From assembly GCA_009859145.1 (NCBI GenBank), contig VRVR01000040.1, forward strand, positions 184,871 through 248,870: 64,000 nt of DNA, written 5' to 3'. Source of the DNA: Andalucia godoyi And28. Its lineage: Eukaryota > Protista > Jakobida. Below the pieces are notes generated by a model. That model was given only the letters and a program-made list of their open reading frames with translations, was not told the origin of the DNA and searched no databases. This document shows, piece after piece, positions 4,108-50,292 of the stretch (positions are counted from its first letter, which is position 1; every line of letters begins with the position of its first letter). A program made the position numbers and the translations under genes.

Positions 4108-4740
4108 ATGCTGTTTGCACGACGGTTGCTGTCTGCGGGTTCTCGAAGGTTTTCTTCTCTTGTCCCGATTGTCATCTCTAATGCCAGTGGCCGCGGGGAG
4201 CGAGCCATGGACATTTACTCTCGGCTGCTGGAGGACCGTATTGTTTGCTTGAGCGGTGCAATCGACGAGCCGCTCTCTTCTGCGATTGTTGCCCAGCTTC
4301 TCTTTCTGGATGCAGAGGACGCCCACAAGCCAATTTCAATGTTTATCAACTCTCCAGGAGGGGAAGTGACTTCGGGGCTGGCAATTTATGACTGCATGAA
4401 GTTTATTCGAGCCCCGGTGTCCACAGTCTGTGTTGGTCAGGCGTGCAGCATGGCCGCAGTGCTGCTTGCGGGCGGATCGTCTGGCCAGCGCCGCATCCTT
4501 CCGAATGCTCGAGTCATGTTGCACCAGCCTCACGGAGGCTTCAACGGCCAGGCGTCCGATATCGAAATTGCTGCCAAAGAGATCCTTTACTTGAAAGAAA
4601 GACTCTTGGATCTGCTCTCCACGGATTGCAAGCAAGAGCGAGGCAAGCTCAAAGAAATTCTGGATCGAGACTACTACTTGCATGCCAAGGAAGCAAAGGA
4701 GTTTGGCATTGTAGATGAGATTATATTCCAAAGACGGTGA
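4108..4740 (+). CDS. CLPP: ATP-dependent Clp protease proteolytic subunit, mitochondrial
   Basis: DIYSRLLEDRIV, INSPGG, GQACSMAAVL (Ser), RVMLHQP (His), DRDYYL (Asp). Start placed at ATG 4108, giving the presequence-like MLFARRLLSAGSRRFSS. Confidence 0.95.
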   Translation: MLFARRLLSAGSRRFSSLVPIVISNASGRGERAMDIYSRLLEDRIVCLSGAIDEPLSSAIVAQLLFLDAEDAHKPISMFINSPGGEVTSGLAIYDCMKFIRAPVSTVCVGQACSMAAVLLAGGSSGQRRILPNARVMLHQPHGGFNGQASDIEIAAKEILYLKERLLDLLSTDCKQERGKLKEILDRDYYLHAKEAKEFGIVDEIIFQRR

Positions 4741-15088: not shown

Positions 15089-16129
15089 ATGAGTGCGGCG
15101 GCGGGATATATAGGGACTGTGATTGCGGTTGGGTTTTTTGGGTCCAACTACATTGTGACGCGCAGTCTTAATTTGGGAAACGGGATAACGTTCCAGTGGT
15201 TGATGAGTATTGGCATTCTGAGTGTTGGGTACCTGAGTCTTCCGATCTCGGAGCCTTTTCGGTTTATCTCTTCGGGTATTCTTGGAGGGTCGTTGTGGGC
15301 ACTCGGGAACTTCCTGGTCACTCCAATCGTAAAGACAGTTGGACTGGGTCTGGGCTTCCTCATCTGGTCCGGAACCAACATGGTGGTCGGCTATGCGATG
15401 GGCAAGTTGCAGCTTTTTGGTATCAGCGATGATGTTCAGAATCAAGCTTTGAATGTCGTAGGCTTCTTGTTTACGTTTGCTGCCTTGATTTGCTACACGT
15501 TTATCAATCCCGATGCTGGGAAGCACGACGATGATCCGCGTTACAGCTCGATTAATGATGGTCACCATGAAGCAACCCCAATTTCCCAGGCAGGCTCAAT
15601 GGCACCCATGTCGGAGACGCAGAAGCCGACGAACACGCTGGAAAAGGCGTCGTTCAAGAAGCGAGCTGCGGGGTGTGCAATGGCTGCGTTTGCGGGCACG
15701 TGCTACGCCGCTTCGTTTGTGCCGTTCACTCTGTGGCACGCCGACAACAAGGATTCCGCGCCTGCTGCGTTTGCGTTCAGCCACTATTCCGGAATCTTTT
15801 TGTTCTCGTCGTTTGTGTACCTGGCGTACTGCATCTATACCAATTGGTACAAGAAGGAGGAGATATTTGTCAATGGGAAAATGGCGTTCCCGAGCTGGGT
15901 GTCCGGGTTCATGTGGGGCTTGGCGAACACGGGATTCTTTTACAGCCAGGCAAATCTTGGATACTCGGTCGGGTACCCAGTTGTCAGCATAGGACCGACG
16001 CTGGTGTCCAGTGCATGGGCCATCTATTTTGGTGAGATGAAGGGGCGGAAGAACCGGCTGTTGCTTGCTGCCAGTTTCTGCTGTGTCATTGCCGGGGTTA
16101 TTATGTTGCTGTTCAGCAAGCTTGGATGA
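15089..16129 (+). CDS. TMEM144-like DMT-superfamily transporter
   Basis: GFFGSNYIV, GNGITFQW, GGSLWALGN, VGLGLGFLIW, SGFMWGLAN; about 10 TM. Confidence 0.85.
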   Translation: MSAAAGYIGTVIAVGFFGSNYIVTRSLNLGNGITFQWLMSIGILSVGYLSLPISEPFRFISSGILGGSLWALGNFLVTPIVKTVGLGLGFLIWSGTNMVVGYAMGKLQLFGISDDVQNQALNVVGFLFTFAALICYTFINPDAGKHDDDPRYSSINDGHHEATPISQAGSMAPMSETQKPTNTLEKASFKKRAAGCAMAAFAGTCYAASFVPFTLWHADNKDSAPAAFAFSHYSGIFLFSSFVYLAYCIYTNWYKKEEIFVNGKMAFPSWVSGFMWGLANTGFFYSQANLGYSVGYPVVSIGPTLVSSAWAIYFGEMKGRKNRLLLAASFCCVIAGVIMLLFSKLG

Positions 16130-16381: not shown

Positions 16382-18328
16382 TCACCGCTTTCCTTCCACG
16401 GATAAATTCTTTGCACAACAGACGCGCATGGAGCGGCAGTAATCTGCAAGACGCGCGACTTCGATCTGAACCGCACGGCAGCTGCTCCCGAACTCTGCAT
16501 CCAGCGCAAACTCTGCAAACACGCCGCATTCGAGATGACGCAGGTACGTCGCAAGGACAACCGTCGTCAAGACCATTGCCCAGTGCTCACACAATTCCGC
16601 ATCCGCTACACTGCGATCGCCTGCCAGATCCTCGCGAACCTGGTTGAACGACGGAGAGGAATTGATCCGGTCCAGCACAAGCGGCAACATGTGCTGGAAT
16701 AATCGAGTCTGCTTGATTTCTCGAGAGAACTGTGCGCACCGTGACGCATTCTTTTCCACTCGAATAAGACCCAACACATCCGACGGTGCATAATCCACGA
16801 CCACGGCAGCCAGCATCGCCAGCGGGCTACTCTGTGACGCGACGCTTTGCGCCGCCGGTTCGTGGGACTGCGATTGAATTTGCTGGGATAGCTGCTGAGC
16901 TAGCTGAACTTGTTGAACTTGGGCATTCGCGCGTGCTCGCTGTACGGTTCTTATTTGCGCAGGCAGACCGCGATCCACAAAATCGACGACCTTTGCAACG
17001 CGCGAGTTGGCATTTTCGCAATAAATGTGCAGCGTCATATCTCTACTCTTGCATCCGTTTCCAAGTGCTAGTTTTTGCAGATCCATGTCCAAGGACGTAG
17101 CAGATCCAGAAGACGCGGTTCTCGACATGAGGAGTCCAAGTCCAGGTCCAGGTCCAGGTCCGGGTCCGGGTCCGGATGCGGGTGCCAGCCCGAGCAGTTG
17201 CTGGTTGTGTAGCAGTTGGTGTTCATGCTGGAGCTGTGCGGCCTCGAGATTTGGAGTGCTTGCGGACTGTCGAAACTCTGCAGCGCGTGCATGATCCATA
17301 ACCACCCCTTCGTACCCACCAAGAGAATCGACGGATTTTGAGCATAACGCATAGCCGCGAGGCATTTTCGACTTTGCATCGATAGGCTGCAGCGATTCGT
17401 AGAGCAAGTCAAGCGGAACCCAGTAAAACGGATATTTGAAGCTTGCGGATTCGAGCAAGAGCACGAGTTTCTTTTCCTTGTGGTATCCTGCGATTGGTGA
17501 AAAGTGTCCGTCGCCCGTCTGTCCCAGGCTTTTTCTGGAGACCGACACCACCATCATGACGTCTGGATTCGAAGTTGTAGTCATGATGTCTCTTTCGAAC
17601 TGTTCAATGGAGACCTCGTTTCCGATTCTCGTGGATATGTCGAGGCCAGTGCAGTGGCCAAGACATGCAAACTGCTGGAGCGTGACGCCCTCCTTGCGCA
17701 CGACATCGAGTGGCGAGCAGCAGTCGAGCATTTCTTCTGTGTACCACCTCCACGGATGCTTCCAGATGCGCATGGGGTCAATTGCAAACGCATTGAGCAC
17801 CATCACCAGCGACGACAGCCCGCAAAACGCGGGGTCCGACTGTGTGCGGAAGTTCTCTGCCAGCACAAAGTAGTTATTCATAAACTCCGACTGCAGCGCC
17901 TCTTTGAAAACAGCGCGGCCTGCCACCGATGCAAACGGCACGAGATTTGCCGGAAGTTGTCTCTTGTACAGGGACTGCGTCGGCGGAAGCGGCGGCGACA
18001 CGCCTGGCGGCGGAAACGCAGACTGCGATAGCACTCCGTTCGACAGCTCGTCAACAGCAGGCAGCGGCGCAGTCGTCGAACACGACGAGCATATCGAGTC
18101 CATTGACGAAAACCGAGTGTGCTTGCTCTGCGTAATCAAACAAGTCTTGGAACACGGATTGCTCTGCTTCCACTGCAACCCATCTCCATCTTCTCCATCT
18201 GCGGCTGTACTGCCCATCCACTCTCCTTCGTCCTCATGGTCACGCCCATGATCATGGTCAGAAACAACTCGATACGCACTTAACGACATCACACCTCCAT
18301 TACTACTATTGCTATTGTTAGTACTCAT
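16382..18328 (-). CDS. PCS: Phytochelatin synthase (gamma-glutamylcysteine dipeptidyl transpeptidase)-like, variant active site
   Basis: FRTQSDPAFCGLSSLVMVLNA (Cys), WKHPWRWYTEEMLDCC, QTGDGHFSPIAGY (His), LLESASFKYP (Glu at the Asp position). Confidence 0.92.
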   Translation of the reverse strand: MSTNNSNSSNGGVMSLSAYRVVSDHDHGRDHEDEGEWMGSTAADGEDGDGLQWKQSNPCSKTCLITQSKHTRFSSMDSICSSCSTTAPLPAVDELSNGVLSQSAFPPPGVSPPLPPTQSLYKRQLPANLVPFASVAGRAVFKEALQSEFMNNYFVLAENFRTQSDPAFCGLSSLVMVLNAFAIDPMRIWKHPWRWYTEEMLDCCSPLDVVRKEGVTLQQFACLGHCTGLDISTRIGNEVSIEQFERDIMTTTSNPDVMMVVSVSRKSLGQTGDGHFSPIAGYHKEKKLVLLLESASFKYPFYWVPLDLLYESLQPIDAKSKMPRGYALCSKSVDSLGGYEGVVMDHARAAEFRQSASTPNLEAAQLQHEHQLLHNQQLLGLAPASGPGPGPGPGPGLGLLMSRTASSGSATSLDMDLQKLALGNGCKSRDMTLHIYCENANSRVAKVVDFVDRGLPAQIRTVQRARANAQVQQVQLAQQLSQQIQSQSHEPAAQSVASQSSPLAMLAAVVVDYAPSDVLGLIRVEKNASRCAQFSREIKQTRLFQHMLPLVLDRINSSPSFNQVREDLAGDRSVADAELCEHWAMVLTTVVLATYLRHLECGVFAEFALDAEFGSSCRAVQIEVARLADYCRSMRVCCAKNLSVEGKR

Positions 18329-23202: not shown

Positions 23203-24402
23203 ATGCGATATTCCAAGGTGATTCTGCGGTTATTGCTGTCGACGTTTGCATCAAAGTTTGCGCTGTGTTCTGTTCTCTTTGTGTTTGTGATCCATGCATT
23301 CACGGCGTCGTCTCGAGATGCAGTCCTGTTTCTGTCGCCCTGGGTTGCGCTCTCTGCGACACGGCTGCCGTCTGTGTACTTGCCGTCACGAGGAGTCCTG
23401 GTCTCTGCTTCAGACTCGGAGAACGCAGTCGTGGCGATGTACCCGCCAGACTCTTTTTCTCCGTCGTTCACATCGGTGCTTGCCGAGCGTCTGAAATCCA
23501 ACATCCATGCAATGTGTGCCTCGGACGATGGTTCGCGCATTGCCGTCGTTTCGCTCCCGGAGTTCACAGTTTATGATGCTACCGACAGCCGATTTGCAGT
23601 CGTTCTCAGACATACAATGGTCAATCTGTCTGCTGCGATGATCCCGTCAAAGGCGACGTTTCGCAACAGGATCTGCGTCTGTTCGGTCGATGCAGCGTTG
23701 CAGAAGTTTAAAAACGAAGACCCAGGCGTCGTCGTCGTTGCGTGTCCGTCTACGCAGCTTTCGGTTGCCGTTGGGTTTTCCAACCGCATATGGTGGATGC
23801 ACTCCGAGCTGGTCGATCCTACGAATCCGGCGAGTGCGCATGTGCATTCGCGAAAGAAGGGCAGACAATTCCCGGTCCAGTACACACTTCCCTACCGCCC
23901 ACCGTGGACAGACAAGCTTTCCCTCACGTCCGATCTCGCAATCGAGCAAATTGACTTTTTTGCATACATTCGACACGTGTACTCGGGTGAACTGCTGGAC
24001 ATCAGGACGCTGCAACGAACTCCTGCCTCTGCACGCATGAACGAGTATTCGCAACGGCTGCGCAGCGACTTGGAAAACGGACTCGATCCATCGGGCGTCG
24101 CAAACATTGGGCCCGACAGCAAGATCAAGACGCGAGCCTGGTGGTCTCCGTTGCATTCGTACCGCGATGAAACCCAGGCTTCTCGATTGCTCCATGTGCC
24201 TGGATTTCCCCAGACATACGTGGCAGTCGGCGACCGGTTTCTCGTCGTCATCTCACAAGACTCGGCATTCCCAAGCGCGCTGCACATCACCGACGACATA
24301 CCGCTGCCCGCTTCCCCTATTGCACCACCGTACGTTCTGCACGGACGAATTATGATTCCCACCGCCCGAGGTCTATTTGGTCTCCATCCCGTCAAGCTGT
24401 GA
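23203..24402 (+). CDS. Hypothetical protein with N-terminal signal/anchor, beta-rich (propeller-like)
   Basis: 399-aa ORF with hydrophobic N-terminus; no family recognised. Confidence 0.7.
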   Translation: MRYSKVILRLLLSTFASKFALCSVLFVFVIHAFTASSRDAVLFLSPWVALSATRLPSVYLPSRGVLVSASDSENAVVAMYPPDSFSPSFTSVLAERLKSNIHAMCASDDGSRIAVVSLPEFTVYDATDSRFAVVLRHTMVNLSAAMIPSKATFRNRICVCSVDAALQKFKNEDPGVVVVACPSTQLSVAVGFSNRIWWMHSELVDPTNPASAHVHSRKKGRQFPVQYTLPYRPPWTDKLSLTSDLAIEQIDFFAYIRHVYSGELLDIRTLQRTPASARMNEYSQRLRSDLENGLDPSGVANIGPDSKIKTRAWWSPLHSYRDETQASRLLHVPGFPQTYVAVGDRFLVVISQDSAFPSALHITDDIPLPASPIAPPYVLHGRIMIPTARGLFGLHPVKL

Positions 24403-25576
24403 TCACATTCCCGCCTTTCCCCCCTTCCTTTTTAGACCGGCCGTTTTGTTCACCATGGTCTGTGTACCTTTGTGCTTTCTTCTTCTTCTTCTTCTTCTTC
24501 TTCTTCTTCTTCTTCTTCTTCTTCTTTGGTTGTACGTTATCATTGCAAGCAAACACAAATGTTGTTATTTTTTTGTCCGGAAGAAGAGTTGTTTCAACAA
24601 AAACAAGAGAAAACACGTTTCTCACGCTTGTCATTTGACCCGCCAACCCAAAAACGTCTGATGGACGGCTGTGATATCATCGGATAGTATGGCTGATGGT
24701 GTGCAGGTCGAGGCCCAGTGAGACACTGTCGACTATCAACAAGCGATTTCTTGTAATCGATGATGGGCGCTGATGCGGATTTATAAAGTCACTTTACTCC
24801 AAATAATCTGGTTTTTTGGGGGCGCAGCATATGCGAGCCAGATGTTTGGGAGAGGCTTCGGTTGGAGGGTAATACCTTCATGCCTTCTGTTTTTAGTTTT
24901 TTCGTCTGATAGTGTTCATTACTTTTTCTTCTCTTCTTTTTTGAGTTCCGCAAAAAGGATGAGATTTAAATAAGAGGCAGATATGCTTGCCGATATTTCT
25001 TCTGGTGAAATTGTTTTGGCGCGCTTTCTCCTTTCTTCCTTTCGTTTTTCACCGGCACACCAGTGGGAATGGTCAAAATGAATAAATTAAAAAACAATCC
25101 TCCATCGGAAAGCAACACCCAGCAAATTCGGATGCGCAGTTCGCGGATGGACATTCTCGCGCATGTCATTAGCGGTGGTCCAAATGGCGGACGAGACCGG
25201 CAAGAATACATGCTCTCTTATGGATAGGGAATTTCAGGGTAGCAAGGATTTAACGGCTGTTAAAACTGACCCCGTCCTGCGCGACCGCATCCAGAGTAGT
25301 AGAAATAGCGGGGAAAGGAGATAAATGAAGACAGACTAACTATCCGTTCGTGTATCAATTCACAAGTTGATTGTCATATGCTGCTTGTTCATGATTTGTT
25401 CGTACTATGCGGAGGTCGGCGCATTCGAAAACAAAGTGAACGCGCGCGAATAAGAAATAGTACCGTCCTAACTTTACATGCATATGGACAAACAACAACA
25501 ACGACAAGAAGAAGAAGAAGAGGAGGAGGAAGACGGAACGAATGAAGGAGTAAACCAAACACACTGGACACACAGT

Positions 25577-25954
25577 CTATCGAGAAAACGACGGAAAGAC
25601 TGCGAGGTTTTCGAGCTTTCCAAAAAACAATCGCAAAGTCTCGTCACCATCATCACCATCACCATCGCGATCACCATCGCGATCATCAGAGCCGCCATTC
25701 GAACGCCGGTTCACACTCCCGTACAAGGTCCTCTGGTCGACCGTCGAGCTGTCCGTTCGGCAGAGTCCTCGTTGGGTCGAGTAATCCGATCCAAACAACA
25801 ACGGGCGCACATTACCATGATTGTCGACGTTGATGTGGTTGATGGCGGCGGCGGAGGCGGCCACCTTTTTAGAGACCGCAGACGAAGCCGCAGCAGGAGA
25901 ACCCACTACAGCAGGAACACTGCTGGAAAGTCTATTCTGAATCTGAGGGACCAT
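25577..25954 (-). CDS. Hypothetical low-complexity protein
   Basis: GC-rich ORF from ATG 25954 between spacers. Confidence 0.5.
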   Translation of the reverse strand: MVPQIQNRLSSSVPAVVGSPAAASSAVSKKVAASAAAINHINVDNHGNVRPLLFGSDYSTQRGLCRTDSSTVDQRTLYGSVNRRSNGGSDDRDGDRDGDGDDGDETLRLFFGKLENLAVFPSFSR

Positions 25955-26506
25955 GGATGATGTCGGTGTGTTTGAGGTTCTCTGCTTGTCGCAAGGATGC
26001 ATTTCGGAAGAACAGAACGAAAAAGAGAACAAAAGGGAAGAAAGGATGGTTAAAAAGAATGGAGCGGAATTCCCCGATGTTGAAGCTCATGAGGGCTCAA
26101 GTGACTCATCTCGGCTCTGTGAATATGAAAGAATGTGAAGCATACAGAAAAGCCCCGGTCGCCCCAGGAAAAAAGAAAAAAGAACCCACTGTAGTGCATG
26201 CAGGCAAAGGCAGCCGTGGCCTTGACGCACGCAGACCTTTCCCTTTCTTCTTTCCTCTCTTCCTTTCCTCTCTTCCTTACCCCTTCTTTCCTTAACCCCC
26301 TTCTTCCCTCTCCTTCTTTCTTCTTTTTCCAAAGTTAGAACTACTAAATATATAGTGTGTGTCTTTTTCTTTCCCTCTACCTCTGTCTCTTACGTGTTCT
26401 GTGATCCGGATTGCACACCAGGGGAGAAGAAGTTGACCAACGATTACAGCTGCTGAGACTGCCAGGACTAAAACTGCGGCGAGTATCGTTCTTTTTTCCG
26501 AGAGCA

Positions 26507-27094
26507 ATGACGACGACGATGCCTGCAGAGGCACCGGTCAAGGTGTTTTCCGAGTGCTCGATTCAGGATGCATCGGAGAATACAGTGTCGGTGACCTCGC
26601 TGCTGACCGATTCTGGAAAGCCGACTGCCGTTGCGCTTGTTCGCCATTTAGGATGAAATATCTGCCTCGCATTTCTTGCAAAATGCAATGCCCGCCACCA
26701 AGAGTTCATTGATCGTGGACTCAATTTCTTTGCTGTTGCACCCTCCAAGGCATCCCACGTGAAGGGGTATCTCGAGGATGAGCCAGACACAAAAATCAAG
26801 TTGTATGCGGATCCAGACAAGTGCATGTTCAAAGCCCTGGATCTCAAACGCGGATTTTTCGCTACCATGTTTTCAAAAGCAGGCTTCAAGGCGTACGGAG
26901 ACGCCAAGAAGGACGGCTTCAAGGCAAAGGGCCTCTATGGAGACGCACTCCAACTCCCAGGATTCTTAATTTCGTCCAAAGGCGGATCAGAATTTGTCTT
27001 TTATCACCGCGGCGAAAGCTCGGGCGACCACGGCGACCTGGACGGCATCTTTGCTGCATACGACGAGTATGCAAAGAACCAAAGCTCCGCATAA
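26507..27094 (+). CDS. AhpC/TSA-2 (PRXL2/SelU-like) thioredoxin-fold selenoprotein, 195 aa with Sec50
   Basis: The ORFs at 26411 and 26759 share a frame. Reading through TGA 26654-26656 gives VALVRHLG-U-NIC (UxxC) ... LYADPDKCMFKALDLKRG ... QLPGFL ... YHRGESSGDH. Confidence 0.88.
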
Positions 27095-27109
27095 TCGTTG
27101 TCTGTTGTC

Positions 27110-27156
<47 letters not shown>

Positions 27157-27361
27157 CTTCTTTTCCTGACAAGCGGGAAATGCATCCAGTTGCCATACGT
27201 CGTTGTGTGTGCTTGTATGCATATCTTTTGGATCTGGGATTAAGGACTTCGGGTTATTTGGGATTTGGTTTGGAGTTGGTGAGGATGGATCCATGAGCGT
27301 AGTTTCGAATCACAGAGAAGACGCGGTCTGCTTTTGCTCGAGTTTCTTCTGTGTGTTCTGT

Positions 27362-27407
27362 ACGACGTCTGCAGCGAAAATCGTGATCGAGGGCTGCACT
27401 GACTGAA
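27362..27407 (+). promoter_or_regulatory. Candidate type II SECIS element with non-canonical ACGA core
   Basis: ACGA + 11 nt + AAAA + UCG-UGAU-CGA minihelix + GCUGCA...GAC + UGAA. UGCAGC/GCUGCA and GUC/GAC pair. Confidence 0.55.
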
Positions 27408-28106: not shown

Positions 28107-28667
28107 ATGTCAGTGGGTATGTGGGTTGTGTGCGCCGTGCTTTTGGTTACGGCGGCTCTGGCGTCTGCGGCGGGGTCGCTGACGAAGCTGAATATCGAGG
28201 CAAACTCGGTGACGGTGTCTGGCATATCGGCCGGTGCGTTTTCTGCGGTACAGTTCCACGTTGCGTATTCGAAGCTTGTGAAGGGTGCTGGTGTGGTTGC
28301 CGGTGGTCCGTTCTATTGTGCACAGGGACAAGTCACGACGGCTCTTACCACCTGCATGGCGGCGCCGGCGATGATCAACGTCGCATCGCTCGAGTCTGCG
28401 GCAAAAGACATGGCAAAGCGTGGTGCGATTGACCCGATCGAGAACATCAAGGGCGCGCCCGTCTTTATCTTTTCGGGTTCTTCAGATACCGTTGTTCAGC
28501 CAGGAGTCGTCAAGGCTAATGCAAAGTGGTACACTGACATGGGCGCAGACGTCCAGACTGAATTTTCCGTATGCCTTCCTCTCTCGCTCTCTCGCTCTCT
28601 CTTTGTCTCTCCCATTCGTCGTTTACTTGGTTTCTCATTACTCATATCGTATCATGCATGTTTCTTG

Positions 28668-28759
<92 letters not shown>

Positions 28760-29317
28760 GTGTGTGTCTCTTTTCTGATTCCGGATTAGATCAATGCGCA
28801 ACATTCGCAAGTGACAAACGACTACGGATCAACTTGCCAGTACCTTGGAAAGCCGTTTGTGAACAACTGCAACTTCGACGCAGCAGGCGCAATCTTGAAT
28901 CATGTTTACGGAACTCTGGGCCGTGGATCGCTGGTGGAGGCCAATCTCAAGACGTTTGACCAGTCGACGTACTTCCCGACATACATCGGACTGAACGGTC
29001 TTGGAAGAACCGGATACATCTATATCCCAACTGCATGCTCCCAGGGCGAGTCATGCAAGCTGCACTTTGCGCTGCATGGATGCTCCATGCGGTACTCAGA
29101 CATTGGTGATGCATACGTCTTGCACGGAGGATACAACCAATGGGCAGAAGCTTCCAACATCGTGGTCGTCTATCCCCAGTTCGAAGCAAACATGCTCAAG
29201 TCAAACCCGAATGCCTGCTCAGACTGGTTCGGAACCACCGGGTCAAACTATGCAGAAAAGGGCGGCGTCCAGAACGAGTTCTTCCGAAACATCGTCACCG
29301 CCCTCGCCGGGTTCTAA
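28107..29317 (+). CDS. Secreted PHB-depolymerase-like alpha/beta hydrolase (join 28107-28568, 28790-29317)
   Basis: Signal peptide, VTVSGISAG (GxSxG), AGGPFYCA, SDTVV, AQHS, NNCNFDAAGAILNHVYG, LHFALHGC, NIVVVYPQ, NPNACSDW. A phase-0 GT-AG intron joins the two ORFs in frame. Confidence 0.88.
28569..28789 (+). other. Spliceosomal intron (221 nt) containing a long (CT)n tract
   Basis: GTATGC donor, CTGAT branch-like motif at 28775, TTAG acceptor; removal restores the reading frame. Confidence 0.85.
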
Positions 29318-29753: not shown

Positions 29754-32030
29754 ATGTTTCGATTATTGAGGGCGCATGGTATCCAGAGTCATGTGCGGAT
29801 AGCAAAGGAGTCGCTCTCTATGTTTTCTGCACCGACGAAACGTGTCGACTCTGTGTTGCTTGTTTCGCGCTCCTTTGCGTCTTTTCTTGGTGGACAAGAT
29901 GCACGATTGAAGAGCTCAGAGGCGCTTGCAAACATGTTTCCAGATAACAGTGCGCAGCAAGCTCGCTATTTGAAGCAACTGCGGTCGGTCGATCCAGAGT
30001 CGGTAGTCAAGCGGTATGAATCGCTCAAGTACGCATCTTCGGCGGATGCATATCAAGAGTATCTGCTGGCATGCGGTGCTTTGGGAATGCTGAATAGGGC
30101 GATTCCAGACTATGGGAGCAATACGTCGGTCTCGAAGCTCACAAGCAGCAGCCACATGAACTATCCGGGAAATGTCGCTACTGCGCAGAACCCAATGATG
30201 ATCGGCAGCAATCCTGCCGCGTTCTCATATCCGCCTCCACCTGCCCCTTCTTTCCAGCAGCAGCAGTATCCATATTCATCATCGCAACAGCCAGTTCAGC
30301 AAAATCAACATCCACAAATGCAAATGAATATGAATCCTGCTGCTGGATATCCGACGTTCACAGCGAACTTTGCGGGTAGCGGCGGAAACCCGCCGAATGT
30401 GCCGGAAGTCGATTTCAGCAAGCCAATCAATGTTGTGTTGGCGGAACCGTCGACGTCATCACAGTTCTGGAGGACAATCAAGATGGCGGTTACGGGAATC
30501 ATTCTTGTTTCTGCAATGGGCGTTTTTGTGGAAGATCGTGCGGGGCTGTCGCGGAACATGTCGTTCAATCCAGAAGCCAACGCACACAAGCCAGTGGATG
30601 TCCGTTTCGAGGATGTAAAGGGATGTGATGAGTGCAAGAGCGAGGTCATCGAGGTTGTGGACTTCCTCAGAGATCCTGCAAAGTTTACGAGGCTCGGCGG
30701 AAAGCTGCCCAAGGGGTTGTTGCTCGTGGGGCCGCCTGGCACGGGAAAGACGCTGTTGGCGAAGGCGATCGCAGGAGAGGCAGGAGTTCCTTTCTTGTAT
30801 GTCTCGGGTTCGGAGTTTGAGGAGATGTTTGTTGGAGTTGGTGCCAAACGGGTGCGCGAATTGTTCGCGGCTGCAAAGAAGTTTGCACCTTGCATTGTGT
30901 TTATTGATGAAATCGACGCAGTGGGAGCAACAAGAAACCCGCGCGATCAGCAGCACTTGCGAATGACGCTCAACCAGCTTTTGGCCGAAATGGACGGATT
31001 CAACTCGCAGGAAGGGATCATCGTCATTGGAGCGACCAACTTTGCGCAGGCGTTGGACAAGGCCTTGATTCGTCCGGGTCGATTTGACCGAACGGTTGTC
31101 GTTCCTGCACCCGATGTCAAAGGCAGAGAAGAAATTCTCAAAGTGCATTTCGAGAAGAACAAGGTCCCGCGCGATGCGACTGTCAACTTACAGATGCTTG
31201 CAAGAAATACCCCTGGTTTCTGCGGAGCGGATCTTGCGAATCTGGTCAACATTGCAGCATTGCGCGCTGCACTGAAGAACAAACAGGCGGTTTCCGTGGA
31301 GGAAATCGAGTTTGCCCGAGACCGGATCCTCATGGGCATTGAAAGAAGCTCTTTTAAGCAGTCTCCAGAAGCAAAGCGTCTGACTGCGTATCATGAAGGC
31401 GGACATGCGCTGGTCGCTCTCTTGACCGAGGGTGCTTCTCCGATTCACAAGGCAACCATTGTTCCTCGTGGCCAGGCCCTGGGAATGGTGCAGCAAGTTC
31501 CAAAAGAAGGAGAAGGAGAAGGATACACTCGCAAGCAGATGAGGGCAATGGTGGATGTCTGCATGGGTGGACGTGTTGCGGAGGAACTCATTTTTGGCCG
31601 CGATGAAATTACTACGGGTGCATCATCTGACATTGAGCAGGCGACCCGCATTGCCCGAGAAATGATTACTAGATACGGGATGAGTGACCTGCTAGGTCCT
31701 GTGGATTACGCCCAGAAGGAAGGTTCTGTAATCTCGGAGGAGACCAGGAAGCAGATCGAGGTTGAAGTGCGCGAGATGGTCGCGCAATCCTATGAACGAG
31801 TCCGGAGATTGCTCAAGTCGAATGAAAAGGACCTGCATTCAGTGGCGAAAACATTGCTAGACAGGGAAACTTTGACGGGCGTCGAGATCATGAACCTCGT
31901 CCAAAAGGGACCGCATTACATTGCTTCAAACACAGCAAAACTTGGCTCGGTCCGCGACGCACCGACTGCTCCCCCGGCTGCTCCTGCGAAGCCAGCGCAA
32001 AAGGCAAAATCCAAACTCTTAGAGGCCTAA
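29754..32030 (+). CDS. YME1: Mitochondrial i-AAA protease (FtsH/YME1)
   Basis: Presequence-like N-terminus, single [31 protein letters not shown] zinc motif. Confidence 0.92.
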
Positions 32031-33056: not shown

Positions 33057-33175
33057 AGGTACGGCCATACTAGAGTGAAAATACCGCATCCCGTCCGATT
33101 TGCGAAGTCAAGTGCTCTCAGGCTGGAGTAGTACTGAGGTGGGTGACCACTCGGGAATTCCCAGTGCTGTACTTT
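33057..33175 (+). rRNA. 5S: Cytosolic 5S rRNA, single dispersed copy
   Basis: GTACGGCCATAC...CCGTCCGAT...GAAGTCAAG...AGTAGTACTG...GACC...GGGAAT...GTGCTGTAC, followed by a T6 Pol III terminator. The 5' end is uncertain by 1-2 nt. Confidence 0.97.
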
Positions 33176-33995: not shown

Positions 33996-34925
33996 CTAGT
34001 GGTGCTCAAGATAGGAACAGGCTGTTCTCGATACCTGCGCAATCATCGCCGCCGTTTGGTCCAGAGACGAGAACGGAGACCCGGAGGGGGATAGAGCGCT
34101 TGGTTCGGATGATCGATAGTGGGCTACGAACTCCACGCTCCCGTCTCTTCCAACAATCTCTGGAAACACAATCTCACTCATGGCGAGTTTGGGACCAACG
34201 ATCGCAGAGCAAGTTTCTGTATGTCGGGTAAGTATGGCTTGGAAGAATGCTTCGTCCTGCTTGGGAACGATCCTTTTTCGTTTCCCGGTGTCCAACAGCT
34301 CCAGTTCATATTGCGGCTTCACGAGCATAATCAAATGCTGAAGCGGCACTGCTGCGAGCTGGCCGGACTTGGCAAATGCTCCAAGCAACTTTGAAACGGA
34401 AATAAAAGACACATCGATCGTCGCAATGGTAGTTTTCTCTAGATGATGTGCAGCATCGGCCATTCGCATGTTTCGGAAGTCCGTTCCTTCCTTCACGGTG
34501 ACGCGGGGATCGCAGCGGAGCGAAGAGTGCAGCTGTTCGGTCCCCACGTCACATGCAATGACGTGCGAAGCACCTCTGCGCAGCAACTCGTGGGTGAACC
34601 CTCCGGTGGAAGACCCGATATCGAGACACGTCTGTTCGTGCACATACACCTGGTGCTTGAACATGTCCAGCGATTTGCGGAGCTTGATTGCTGCCCTGGA
34701 GACCGCGCCAAAGCCATATGGCCCTTCGGACACGTCGATCGTCACCCTGGGCCGCAGCAGATTCCAGTCAGCGACCGTGGAGGGAACCAGCTTCGTAGGA
34801 ACGCACGCACTTGTTGCATTCGGCGCACATACGTCAAGCACCACCTTGCCGAGTCGAACAAGCTCTGCTGCATGGACTCGCGTGGATGCAAGTCCTAGAG
34901 TGACCAGAAGCTTGTCCAGGCGCAT
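33996..34925 (-). CDS. tlyA: TlyA-family rRNA 2'-O-methyltransferase (S4 + FtsJ domains)
   Basis: MRLDKLLV..GLA.TR, SRAAIKL, LDIGSSTGGFT, DVGTEQL, DVSFIS, LVKPQYE, GRDGSVEF; K-D-K-E tetrad intact. Confidence 0.92.
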   Translation of the reverse strand: MRLDKLLVTLGLASTRVHAAELVRLGKVVLDVCAPNATSACVPTKLVPSTVADWNLLRPRVTIDVSEGPYGFGAVSRAAIKLRKSLDMFKHQVYVHEQTCLDIGSSTGGFTHELLRRGASHVIACDVGTEQLHSSLRCDPRVTVKEGTDFRNMRMADAAHHLEKTTIATIDVSFISVSKLLGAFAKSGQLAAVPLQHLIMLVKPQYELELLDTGKRKRIVPKQDEAFFQAILTRHTETCSAIVGPKLAMSEIVFPEIVGRDGSVEFVAHYRSSEPSALSPSGSPFSSLDQTAAMIAQVSRTACSYLEHH

Positions 34926-47787: not shown

Positions 47788-48640
47788 ATTTTTCTATGGA
47801 TTATGGCAGACAGACAGACAGACAGACAGACAGAAACTGAAAAGAGAAGGTAGTTCACAGCTCTCGTTTTTTCAAGTGTTGTCGGGTTGTATATGCTCCT
47901 GCGTGAGTATGAGTGTGAGTGTGAGTGTGAGTGTGAGTGTGAGTGTGAGCATGAGTGGGCCTGCACGTAAAGAAAAAAAACGAGAGCGAGAACGAGAATC
48001 GATTGACGAGAAACAGTACGCATCAGTGGTCTTTGAGCTTTCTTGTTTGATGCGAGCGGTGATGATGCACGGTGAAGTCGGACAGGTGGCAAAATGCGGG
48101 AATTAAGCAATACAGGAAAGATTGACAGGGTCGGAAATCGGAGAGAAAGTCCTGGAATGTCCGCCTTCTTCTTTTTGTTTATGTTTACGGTTGACGATGG
48201 AGATGGTGAGGAGGAAGGGCAGGAAGAAGAAGATCGTCAGACGGGAAACTTGCTGAGCAGGTTGAGGAAGAAATCACGGAGATGCGGTCGATTTGCGTTC
48301 GGACTGCGCTTTCAAGTCAGAGAACAAGAAGGAGCAGCGATGTGCAACGCCGCCGACCACATTCTGTTTCCTCCAACGTTCATTTTTGTATATTGAATGT
48401 TGAATCGATCTCCAAAAAATAAATATATAAATAAATAAATAAAGAAGAAAAAAAAACATGCGGCTGGGATCTGTCTTCAGTGACAGCTCAGCCGATGATC
48501 AATAAACGATTCATGTTTTGGCGAGAAAGTAGTTTACAAATGTGCGCAACGTAAATCGTGTTTTTCTTTTCTTCCTTCCCCGCTGCCTCCCTCGCAGCTT
48601 ACCGGCAAACCCGTTTCCAGTAGGAAACCGGGAGCTTTCC

Positions 48641-49978
48641 CTAACCAGTATACGTGAAGCCATCCTCAAAGTCGATCTGGAAGATCTGGTTGAAGATGGA
48701 GACGATCTGCGGGTTCGTGACCGCCAACGTAATGTCGCGATTGGCCTTTCTCCAGGTGTTCGGGTTGCTCGCAAATGTCGTGAACGTCATTGATCCGGAC
48801 GGATAGTCTGTCGGCGACCAGTTTCCGGACGACAAGAACACGGTGGTTCCGTCCACAATCCAGAACTTCTCATGGTTGAAGCGGAGACATTTGGGATCGG
48901 TTTTCTTGAATGAGATTCCGGCAGCATAGAGCTTCTTGTAACATTGCTGGGTCGTCTCGTAGTCATCCTGATCAAAGATGTGGTCCGAGACAATCATGTT
49001 GATGTGAATGCCACTCTGGTGCATGTCAATGAGCTTGCTGCACATATCATCGTCGTTGATCTGGTACATCGAGATTGTGATGGATCCCTTTGTGGAGTTC
49101 AGGCCGTACATCAGAGAGTCCAGCGCAGAGTCCGGGGATGCAAACGAAACAACATCAAAGGTGCCAGTGATGGGCTCCGAGAGCGACTTCCCAACATTAC
49201 AAGAGAATGTCTTCGTTGACGGGATATCCGGGTTGAGGTACGACTCGTCTGCAATCGTCTTCATGTCGTCAGCAGAGTACGTCTGTCCGGGCACGAGATC
49301 CGTCGCCTGGTCCCAGTCCAGCTCGACGATCGACATCAAGTAGTTCGTCCACTGCGGAGAGTCTTCGATGATCATTCCAGCTTCGCGGTTGGACATGAAC
49401 GACGTGTAGGAAAAGTTCACAGACGACACAGACACCCGCGCATCCGAGCCTCCGTTGTTGTCGGTCGCAATAAACTTGAGATGGATAAACGTAACCGTAG
49501 TGAAATAGCGCACCTTTGCTCCGGCAAGCTGCAAGAACGTCAGGGGATCAATCATTCCGGGGCACGCCGGCTGTTCATAGTTGTTCGTAAGGATCCGAAC
49601 GTTCACTCCTCGGTGAACTGCATTAAGCAATGCACGGAAGATGGGGAACTCTTCTCCGTTGCGCGCATAGGTGATGTTGCATCCTACGCACTTCTGAGTG
49701 GACCAGTCGGTGCATCCAGACCACGATGAGAATCCAGGCGTTGCAACCACGACCCATTTCTTTGCATTTTCAACCATGTTTGTCAGCGTACCGATCGTGT
49801 CCGTTGGCGAGAAAATCGGAGTCACAGTCGCAGAGACACCACTCGCGCGAAAAACCGGAATCGAGGCCGTATACGGCGATGTTTGGTGATCAAAGGACGG
49901 ATCCGAAGGCGGCGTCTGCGCACGGATGGCCAGAACAAGCACAAACAACAGTGCACACAAGTAGAATGCGCGGGGCAT
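48641..49978 (-). CDS. Secreted phospholipase D-superfamily protein with two HKD motifs
   Basis: Signal peptide MPRAFYLCALLFVLVLAIRA; HLKFIATD and HEKFWIVD (HxKxxxxD); SSGNWS. Confidence 0.88.
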   Translation of the reverse strand: MPRAFYLCALLFVLVLAIRAQTPPSDPSFDHQTSPYTASIPVFRASGVSATVTPIFSPTDTIGTLTNMVENAKKWVVVATPGFSSWSGCTDWSTQKCVGCNITYARNGEEFPIFRALLNAVHRGVNVRILTNNYEQPACPGMIDPLTFLQLAGAKVRYFTTVTFIHLKFIATDNNGGSDARVSVSSVNFSYTSFMSNREAGMIIEDSPQWTNYLMSIVELDWDQATDLVPGQTYSADDMKTIADESYLNPDIPSTKTFSCNVGKSLSEPITGTFDVVSFASPDSALDSLMYGLNSTKGSITISMYQINDDDMCSKLIDMHQSGIHINMIVSDHIFDQDDYETTQQCYKKLYAAGISFKKTDPKCLRFNHEKFWIVDGTTVFLSSGNWSPTDYPSGSMTFTTFASNPNTWRKANRDITLAVTNPQIVSIFNQIFQIDFEDGFTYTG

Positions 49979-50292
49979 TTTTTCCGTCTCCTTCCTGACT
50001 ACTTGCAATAATAATGTCTCATGGAATGAATGAGGAGAATTTATACACCAAAAAAATCAACAACGCATGTGAAAGCTCTAAAATAGGCGAAGGAAATCTC
50101 GTCGGATTTGGAAATCAATCGAACAACTGACAGTTGCCTCTTTTTCCTTCTACAGTCGCGGAGGACGGCATTAAAAAATAATAACAACAACAACCATAAA
50201 TGAAAGGAATCGTGAGAGAAGAGGCATTGAGGGGAGAGAGTCGCGGCGAAAGACGAGATTGGAGAAAGGAAAACTGGAAGAGAATAATTTAC

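Follow-up and report, generated by a model that had tools for sequence, protein, structure and literature searches.

A probable selenocysteine codon in a PRX-like2 oxidoreductase gene of the jakobid Andalucia godoyi

Introduction

Does an in-frame TGA in the jakobid Andalucia godoyi end one protein, or is it read as an amino acid in the middle of a longer one? Because UGA is taken as a stop, the annotation of selenoprotein genes routinely goes wrong, and the locus considered here, which lies in a 64,000-nucleotide stretch of Andalucia DNA (hereafter the window; nuclear contig VRVR01000040.1, assembly GCA_009859145.1), appears in databases only as a fragment. The nuclear genome of Andalucia godoyi is compact (about 20 Mb), with 88% of 864 genes examined being free of introns (PMC7050145); this fits the long uninterrupted open reading frames seen on both strands of the window. 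Neither the genome paper nor its supplements mention selenocysteine (Sec), selenoproteins or SECIS elements (PMC7050145), and a search for literature on selenoproteins in Andalucia, jakobids or Discoba returned nothing relevant.

Working from sequence, we consider it likely, and hold with some confidence, that the locus is a single intron-less gene for a 195-residue PRX-like2 oxidoreductase, in which TGA 26654-26656 is decoded as Sec.

Results

A single reading frame broken by one TGA

A preliminary description of this DNA held that two predicted open reading frames were one frame interrupted only by TGA 26654-26656. Translation and the exact local sequence bear this out: the codons GTT CGC CAT TTA GGA TGA AAT ATC TGC read VRHLG-TGA-NIC, and the frame (26507-27094, forward strand) runs for 195 codons – 49 before the TGA, the TGA itself and 145 after it – to a TAA at 27092-27094. 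The homologues of the gene are of equal length and share the same start region in the full-length alignment. The features of the gene are as follows.

26507..27094, forward strand: predicted selenoprotein coding sequence, 195 codons including one Sec codon, plus TAA (translation; Pfam matches across the TGA; full-length homologue alignment)
26507..26653, forward strand: N-terminal 49 codons, up to the strand preceding the active site (homologue alignment; P0005 model; coding potential 0.14 bits/codon)
26654..26656, forward strand: in-frame TGA, predicted Sec codon, residue 50, position 1 of UxxC (TGA in this column in homologues, Cys in bacteria and PRXL2B)
26657..27091, forward strand: C-terminal 145 codons, remainder of the thioredoxin fold (PF13911 over residues 64-170; the public call keeps part only)
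26663..26665, forward strand: TGC, Cys53, position 2 of UxxC, predicted resolving residue (invariant in all five clade members and the bacterial relatives)

Pairs of open reading frames joined by a TGA, each member 40 codons or longer, are not rare in themselves: the window contains 215. This pair heads the list when the 215 are ordered by the codon-usage coding potential of both halves, with values (0.14 and 0.13 bits/codon) that fall within the range of most genuine long genes in the window (0.11-0.26 bits/codon). The stop codons of 17 long open reading frames in the window comprise seven TGA, six TAA and four TAG. TGA is thus the commonest ordinary stop and not a reassigned sense codon here; its presence in frame within a conserved gene therefore needs a specific explanation.

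The sole call of this gene in the public protein collection (representative library) is P0002, a protein of 89 amino acids that is 100% identical to the translation. That only this fragment is on record indicates that the gene has been split or truncated by gene callers, as the preliminary description had anticipated: the public call keeps 89 of the 195 residues and loses the active site. Judging from the structural model described below, such a C-terminal piece, which has neither an active site nor the opening strands of the fold, would be unable to function as an enzyme by itself.

A thioredoxin fold that runs across the TGA

With Cys placed at the TGA, the protein matches two Pfam families: AhpC-TSA_2 (PF13911; residues 64-170, 1.1e-8, 35.9 bits against a cut-off of 27) and AhpC-TSA (PF00578; residues 16-114, 2e-6, 28.2 bits against a cut-off of 26). 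These ranges place a thioredoxin-fold domain across the TGA. The best sequence match in the PDB is human prostamide/prostaglandin F synthase PRXL2B (SelU2; 9us9, E 3.7e-6), whose active site, RRFG-C44-VVC47, aligns with VRHLG-U-NIC such that the catalytic Cys44 occupies the TGA column. The motif R(H/R)xG-C/U-xx-C that had been proposed for this position is accordingly found both in PRXL2B (RRFG-C-VVC) and in bacterial relatives (RHFG-C-IFC, or with TGA in place of the first Cys codon).

For structure we modelled not the window protein itself but a member of its clade, P0005, which is 32% identical to it. The model (pLDDT 92.9, pTM 0.88) finds its best structural matches among PRXL2B entries (TM 0.82-0.83 on target length, E 4e-13). 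The residue encoded by the TGA of P0005, residue 53, is predicted to lie between a strand (43-48) and a helix (55-66), the standard position of the active site in a thioredoxin fold; the equivalent of the N-terminal segment forms a beta-hairpin and a strand before the active site.

Placement within the superfamily is less simple. The best NCBIfam profile is NF040769, 'SelL-related redox protein' (E 3.7e-22, 78.8 bits, residues 33-184 on positions 18-172 of 173); the window protein falls below its curated cut-off of 120 bits, and the bacterial proteins P0010 and P0041 score 112.7 and 118. A profile built from the five clade members returned no named eukaryotic relative among 5.8 billion clusters. 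Since the nearest curated profile is SelL-related and not the SelU orthologue group, the name 'SelU' holds only at the level of the superfamily. Of the earlier assignment to PRXL2/SelU, then, the superfamily stands (PF13911 is above its cut-off), and the SelU group would be one possible home beside the SelL-related group; on sequence grounds the gene can safely be placed in the PRX-like2 / AhpC-TSA_2 superfamily as a SelU/SelL-related member.

Comparison with known systems makes the position of the gene clearer. It shares with the SelU/PRXL2 proteins (PRXL2A, PRXL2B, PRXL2C) the PF13911 domain, the thioredoxin fold and the motif R-(R/H)-x-G-(C/U)-x-x-C, whose first position is Sec in some lineages of that family and Cys in others; but identity to PRXL2B is only about 25%, and the nearest curated profile is bacterial and SelL-related. 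Bacterial members of the SelL-related group (NF040769) carry RHFG-C-IFC or RHFG-TGA-xFC, so that Sec and Cys forms both exist. Selenoprotein L proper has a UxxU motif, whereas all five clade members have UxxC (in the window gene through the TGC at 26663-26665); moreover, SECIS elements in the eukaryote-type clade are in the 3′ UTR, while the bacterial Sec forms would require one adjoining the UGA. The next-best structural matches to the P0005 model (TM about 0.7-0.8 on target length) are Bcp/PrxQ peroxiredoxins and ResA-type oxidoreductases. In these the nucleophile sits at the same fold position as the TGA residue and PF00578 is shared, but identity is 10-18%, and the motif, (U/C)xxC, differs from the PxxxTxxC of peroxiredoxins.

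Homologues carry the same TGA

A HMMER search with the 145 residues that follow the TGA, against 1.84 billion representatives, gave 77 matches at E <= 1e-3 and four at E <= 1e-10. The top match is the Andalucia gene itself, as fragment P0002. DNA was recovered for four closest homologues, from four different samples, and in all four a TGA occupies the same alignment column.

L001, JGI metagenome contig: TGA 4677-4679, LVRHLG TGA NICLA
L003, Logan SRR26825228: TGA 385-387, LLRHYG TGA NLCKR
L004, Logan SRR13727538: TGA 339-341, LVRHLG TGA NICLA
L005, Logan SRR15116022, 22-kb contig: TGA 342-344, MARHLG TGA NICSE

Each of these four proteins is full length (191-201 residues) only when the TGA is read through. 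The eukaryote-type UxxC clade is very small, with five members found among billions of predicted proteins.

The block that flanks the TGA is the most conserved part of the protein. The residues PTAVALVRHLG are identical in the window, L001 and L004. The window and L001 differ in the block PTAVALVRHLG-TGA-NICLA by 12 synonymous changes over 16 sense codons and by no amino-acid change; over the whole protein identity is 50%, with the amino acid kept at 18 of 47 aligned codons upstream of the TGA and at 76 of 143 downstream. Conservation of the TGA, the synonymous nature of the changes around it and identity on both sides together form, in sequence comparison, the pattern of a translated codon under purifying selection, and not that of a stop, a pseudogene or a sequencing error.

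Several observations on these homologues deserve mention. The stored protein of L003 (P0005) has Trp at the TGA, and the L003 DNA does not translate to the stored protein; the Trp indicates gene calling with a genetic code that treats TGA as sense. The L003 contig begins with Illumina adapter sequence and resembles a transcript, in which case the TGA would be part of the mature mRNA. Stable hairpins lie just 3′ of the Sec UGA in L004 (339-395) and L005 (342-398), with z of -2.7 and -2.8, while the equivalent stretch of the window has none (z 0.19); the hairpins could serve to stimulate recoding, or could be no more than an effect of base composition. Scans of metagenomes with a peptide pattern and with a DNA pattern across the motif gave no matches.

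SECIS elements in the homologues

Evidence that the TGA of this clade specifies Sec comes from the 3′ UTRs of the homologues. In L004, positions 982-1047, 209 nt past the stop codon, give a full-length match to Rfam SECIS_1 (RF00031) of 24.1 bits; in L005, positions 867-933, 100 nt past the stop, give a full-length match of 18.1 bits, the sole match in that stretch. Both lie under the SECIS_1 gathering score of 35. The two matches coincide with AUGA-helix-AAA...UGAU elements drawn by eye, and our own SECIS descriptor scores them at 9.5 (L004) and 8.5 (L005), values that occur as background in the window at about 0.02 per kb. The unconstrained minimum free energy (MFE) fold of the L003 3′ UTR has the shape of a SECIS – AUGA at 945, then a helix II of 10 bp followed by AAAA, and a small helix III before UGAC (z -2.46) – and was not reported by Rfam. 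The L001 contig stops 62 nt past the stop codon, just at an ATGA. MAFFT gave no structural alignment of the homologue SECIS elements, and hence no covariance model.

The earlier proposal of a 195-amino-acid selenoprotein thus gains strong support from two sides: the TGA present in four of the four closest homologues, and eukaryotic SECIS elements in their 3′ UTRs.

The 3′ UTR of the Andalucia gene

Rfam at permissive thresholds, applied to three nested ranges of the 3′ region in the window, found no SECIS, and our own strict and relaxed descriptors found no compact convincing element in the 1 kb downstream of the stop codon. A relaxed scan, which accepted any N-GA core of compact geometry, reached a best score of 4.5, a level that background sequence attains more than once per kb. 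One SECIS-like candidate emerged.

27293..27387, forward strand: sole SECIS-like candidate, unconfirmed; AUGA 27293-27296, AA 27308-27309, UGAU 27384-27387; 199 nt past the stop codon

In this candidate helix II is formed by CGUAGUUUCG (27298-27307) pairing with CGAAAAUCG (27375-27383), the latter adjoining the UGAU, and there is an apical insertion of 66 nt. Within the 1 kb downstream, no A-UGA-N11-AA site other than the ATGA at 27293-27296 occurs. The candidate's score does not rise above background, where sites of this kind number about 0.4 per kb; forcing the fold costs about 11 kcal/mol relative to the MFE, and Rfam SECIS_1 does not match it. Being at background level and energetically disfavoured, it is listed only as an unconfirmed candidate. 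A larger pairing, of AUGA 27293 with GA 27438, was rejected: the GA is not placed opposite the UGA.

Strong SECIS-like sites occur by chance elsewhere in the window too, and one on the reverse strand (48300-48390, near 48383) is instructive. It has AUGA-N11-AA, a long apical helix and UGA on the 3′ side, and lies 258 nt past an open reading frame for a PLD-like secreted protein (48641-50008, reverse strand). The adjoining gene ends in TAG and contains no in-frame TGA, and the site was set aside as a chance match. So strong a SECIS-like site beside a gene that is not a selenoprotein urges caution in calling SECIS elements by pattern.

Two further features lie close to the gene: a (GTT)14 microsatellite at 27107-27150, beginning 13 nt past its stop codon, and a polypyrimidine tract of about 95 nt upstream (26240-26335). 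The notion that the latter marks a kinetoplastid trans-splice site was dropped, the source being Andalucia godoyi.

Cys and TGA forms among bacterial relatives

Full-length relatives of bacterial type (about 180-200 amino acids) have Cys at the TGA column, in the context VRHFG-C-IFCRQQ. At least ten shorter relatives (about 125-140 amino acids) start with M-F-C-R-E-Q, exactly one residue past that column; they include P0021, P0023, P0040, P0042, P0053, P0058, P0061, P0068, P0199 and P0200. At the locus of P0040 (L006, an NCBI MAG) the DNA reads VFLRHFG-TGA-LFCREQ, with TGA at 1498-1500 followed by CTG TTC TGC: given this in-frame TGA, the gene caller restarted P0040 at the CTG just after it. 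At a further locus, L007 (TGA column at 159-161), the called gene abuts an upstream open reading frame in the same frame. The Cys of the full-length relatives, together with the TGA of L006 and L007, indicates that the wider family has both Cys and Sec forms at this position, bacteria included, and the short MFCREQ proteins seem to be bacterial selenoproteins that were called too short. A 6-bp GC-rich hairpin lies 13 nt downstream of the TGA in L006.

Genomic neighbourhood and Sec machinery

Other genes recognised in the window are listed here.

15089-16129, forward strand: TMEM144-family transporter
16382-18328, reverse strand: phytochelatin synthase (PF05023, 4.9e-80)
29754-32030: FtsH-like protein gene, a neighbour
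33057-33175, forward strand: 5S ribosomal RNA gene (Rfam RF00001, 100.8 bits); no other RNA family in the window passes its curated threshold
33996-34925, reverse strand: FtsJ-like methyltransferase

The phytochelatin synthase, TMEM144-family and FtsJ-like neighbours are unrelated to selenium metabolism. Upstream of the gene, about 2.1 kb (24402-26507) holds no convincing open reading frame. Downstream, at 28107-29317 (forward strand), adjacent open reading frames of 223 and 168 amino acids, neither of which matches a Pfam family, are probably one gene with an intron near 28590-28810, a stretch rich in (CT)n repeats.

The 64-kb window contains no tRNA genes, and none for tRNA-Sec by Rfam. With a SepSecS probe, the best 120 matches listed were all from vertebrates. 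A look-up of transcript assemblies through the exact fragment proteins found none on record for Andalucia.

Discussion

The central issue is what the cell does on meeting the UGA. The frame, the fold, the match of the TGA to the catalytic Cys, the retention of the TGA and the SECIS elements of the homologues are direct results; Sec insertion in Andalucia itself we infer, and likewise where its SECIS lies, the substrate and the chemistry. If it works as other CxxC and UxxC enzymes of the thioredoxin fold do, Sec50, at the N-terminal end of the first active-site helix and within the motif U-N-I-C, would be the nucleophile that attacks an oxidised substrate (a peroxide, an endoperoxide or a disulfide). 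Cys53 may then resolve the intermediate as a selenenylsulfide with Sec50, and thioredoxin or glutathione, by the same analogy, would reduce the selenenylsulfide and regenerate the enzyme. Recoding of the UGA would rely on a 3′ UTR SECIS together with the eukaryotic Sec machinery.

The failure to find a SECIS in the 3′ UTR of the window gene leaves room for other explanations: a relic, read-through independent of selenium, an error in base calling, or separate or spliced products. The one that survives best, improbable as we judge it, is that the gene is a relic – a pseudogene in a lineage that has lost Sec decoding, or in which the gene has lost its SECIS, so that the TGA now ends translation after 49 residues and the remainder is decaying. 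The lack of a clear SECIS in the 3′ UTR is what such a history would leave, and no selenoproteins have been reported for the Andalucia godoyi genome. But decay is not what the sequence looks like. Both halves are intact, with neither a frameshift nor a second stop over 195 codons; codon usage is gene-like in each; and the most conserved block is precisely that which flanks the TGA. A dead gene is not expected to keep such features.

It is also conceivable, if very unlikely, that selenium plays no part, and that a near-cognate or suppressor tRNA places Cys, Trp or Arg at the UGA to yield a full-length protein. This would account for a full-length frame that is conserved even though no SECIS is seen in the window. 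Against it stand the eukaryotic SECIS elements of the homologues with the same TGA, which point to Sec, and the efficiency of TGA as an ordinary stop in this genome; in addition, to judge from the aligned sequences, only Cys or Sec would be expected to function at the active-site position.

The two remaining explanations have less still to recommend them. An error of sequencing or assembly, with a true codon of TGT or TGC and an ordinary CxxC enzyme, requires a single base change, and Cys forms do dominate the bacterial relatives; a TGA at exactly this codon in four independent homologues, from different samples and assemblies, makes it highly improbable. Just as hard to credit are two separate products, a C-terminal protein initiated downstream, or an intron that removes the TGA: gene callers did produce an 89-amino-acid fragment and about 12% of examined Andalucia genes have introns (PMC7050145), but a C-terminal piece would start too late to include the active site or the opening strands of the fold, and the TGA falls within the best-conserved motif, in exact register with the catalytic Cys of homologues, so that splicing would destroy the motif. 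The claim that no splice signal need be invoked is in this respect upheld.

We return, then, to a UGA read as Sec, and to the signal that would direct it. The Andalucia gene's own SECIS would be either non-canonical or one not yet found. A fuller proposal – that Andalucia, and so jakobids, decode Sec, that the gene belongs to a very rare eukaryotic UxxC PRX-like2 clade, and that the recoding signal in Andalucia may be non-canonical – we advance tentatively, as possible but, taken whole, rather doubtful. The signal may in that case be a SECIS with a long apical insertion, a SECIS completed by removal of a short segment of the 3′ UTR, or some other element; were it non-canonical, standard SECIS finders would miss the organism's selenoproteome.

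As a selenoprotein the enzyme is of an ordinary kind. What is new, and modestly so, is the sign of Sec use in a jakobid, and membership of a very small clade of eukaryote type for which the closest profile comes from bacteria. The family alignment carries a further message for annotation, in that a number of public bacterial relatives seem to be truncated at the same Sec codon. For Andalucia godoyi, a reference protist in work on how early eukaryotes and mitochondria evolved, the corrected call adds a redox enzyme, and provides the first indication we have found, at the level of sequence, of Sec use in a jakobid. Within Discoba the Sec trait is present in kinetoplastids, Naegleria and euglenids; its use by a jakobid would widen the known spread of the trait within that group.
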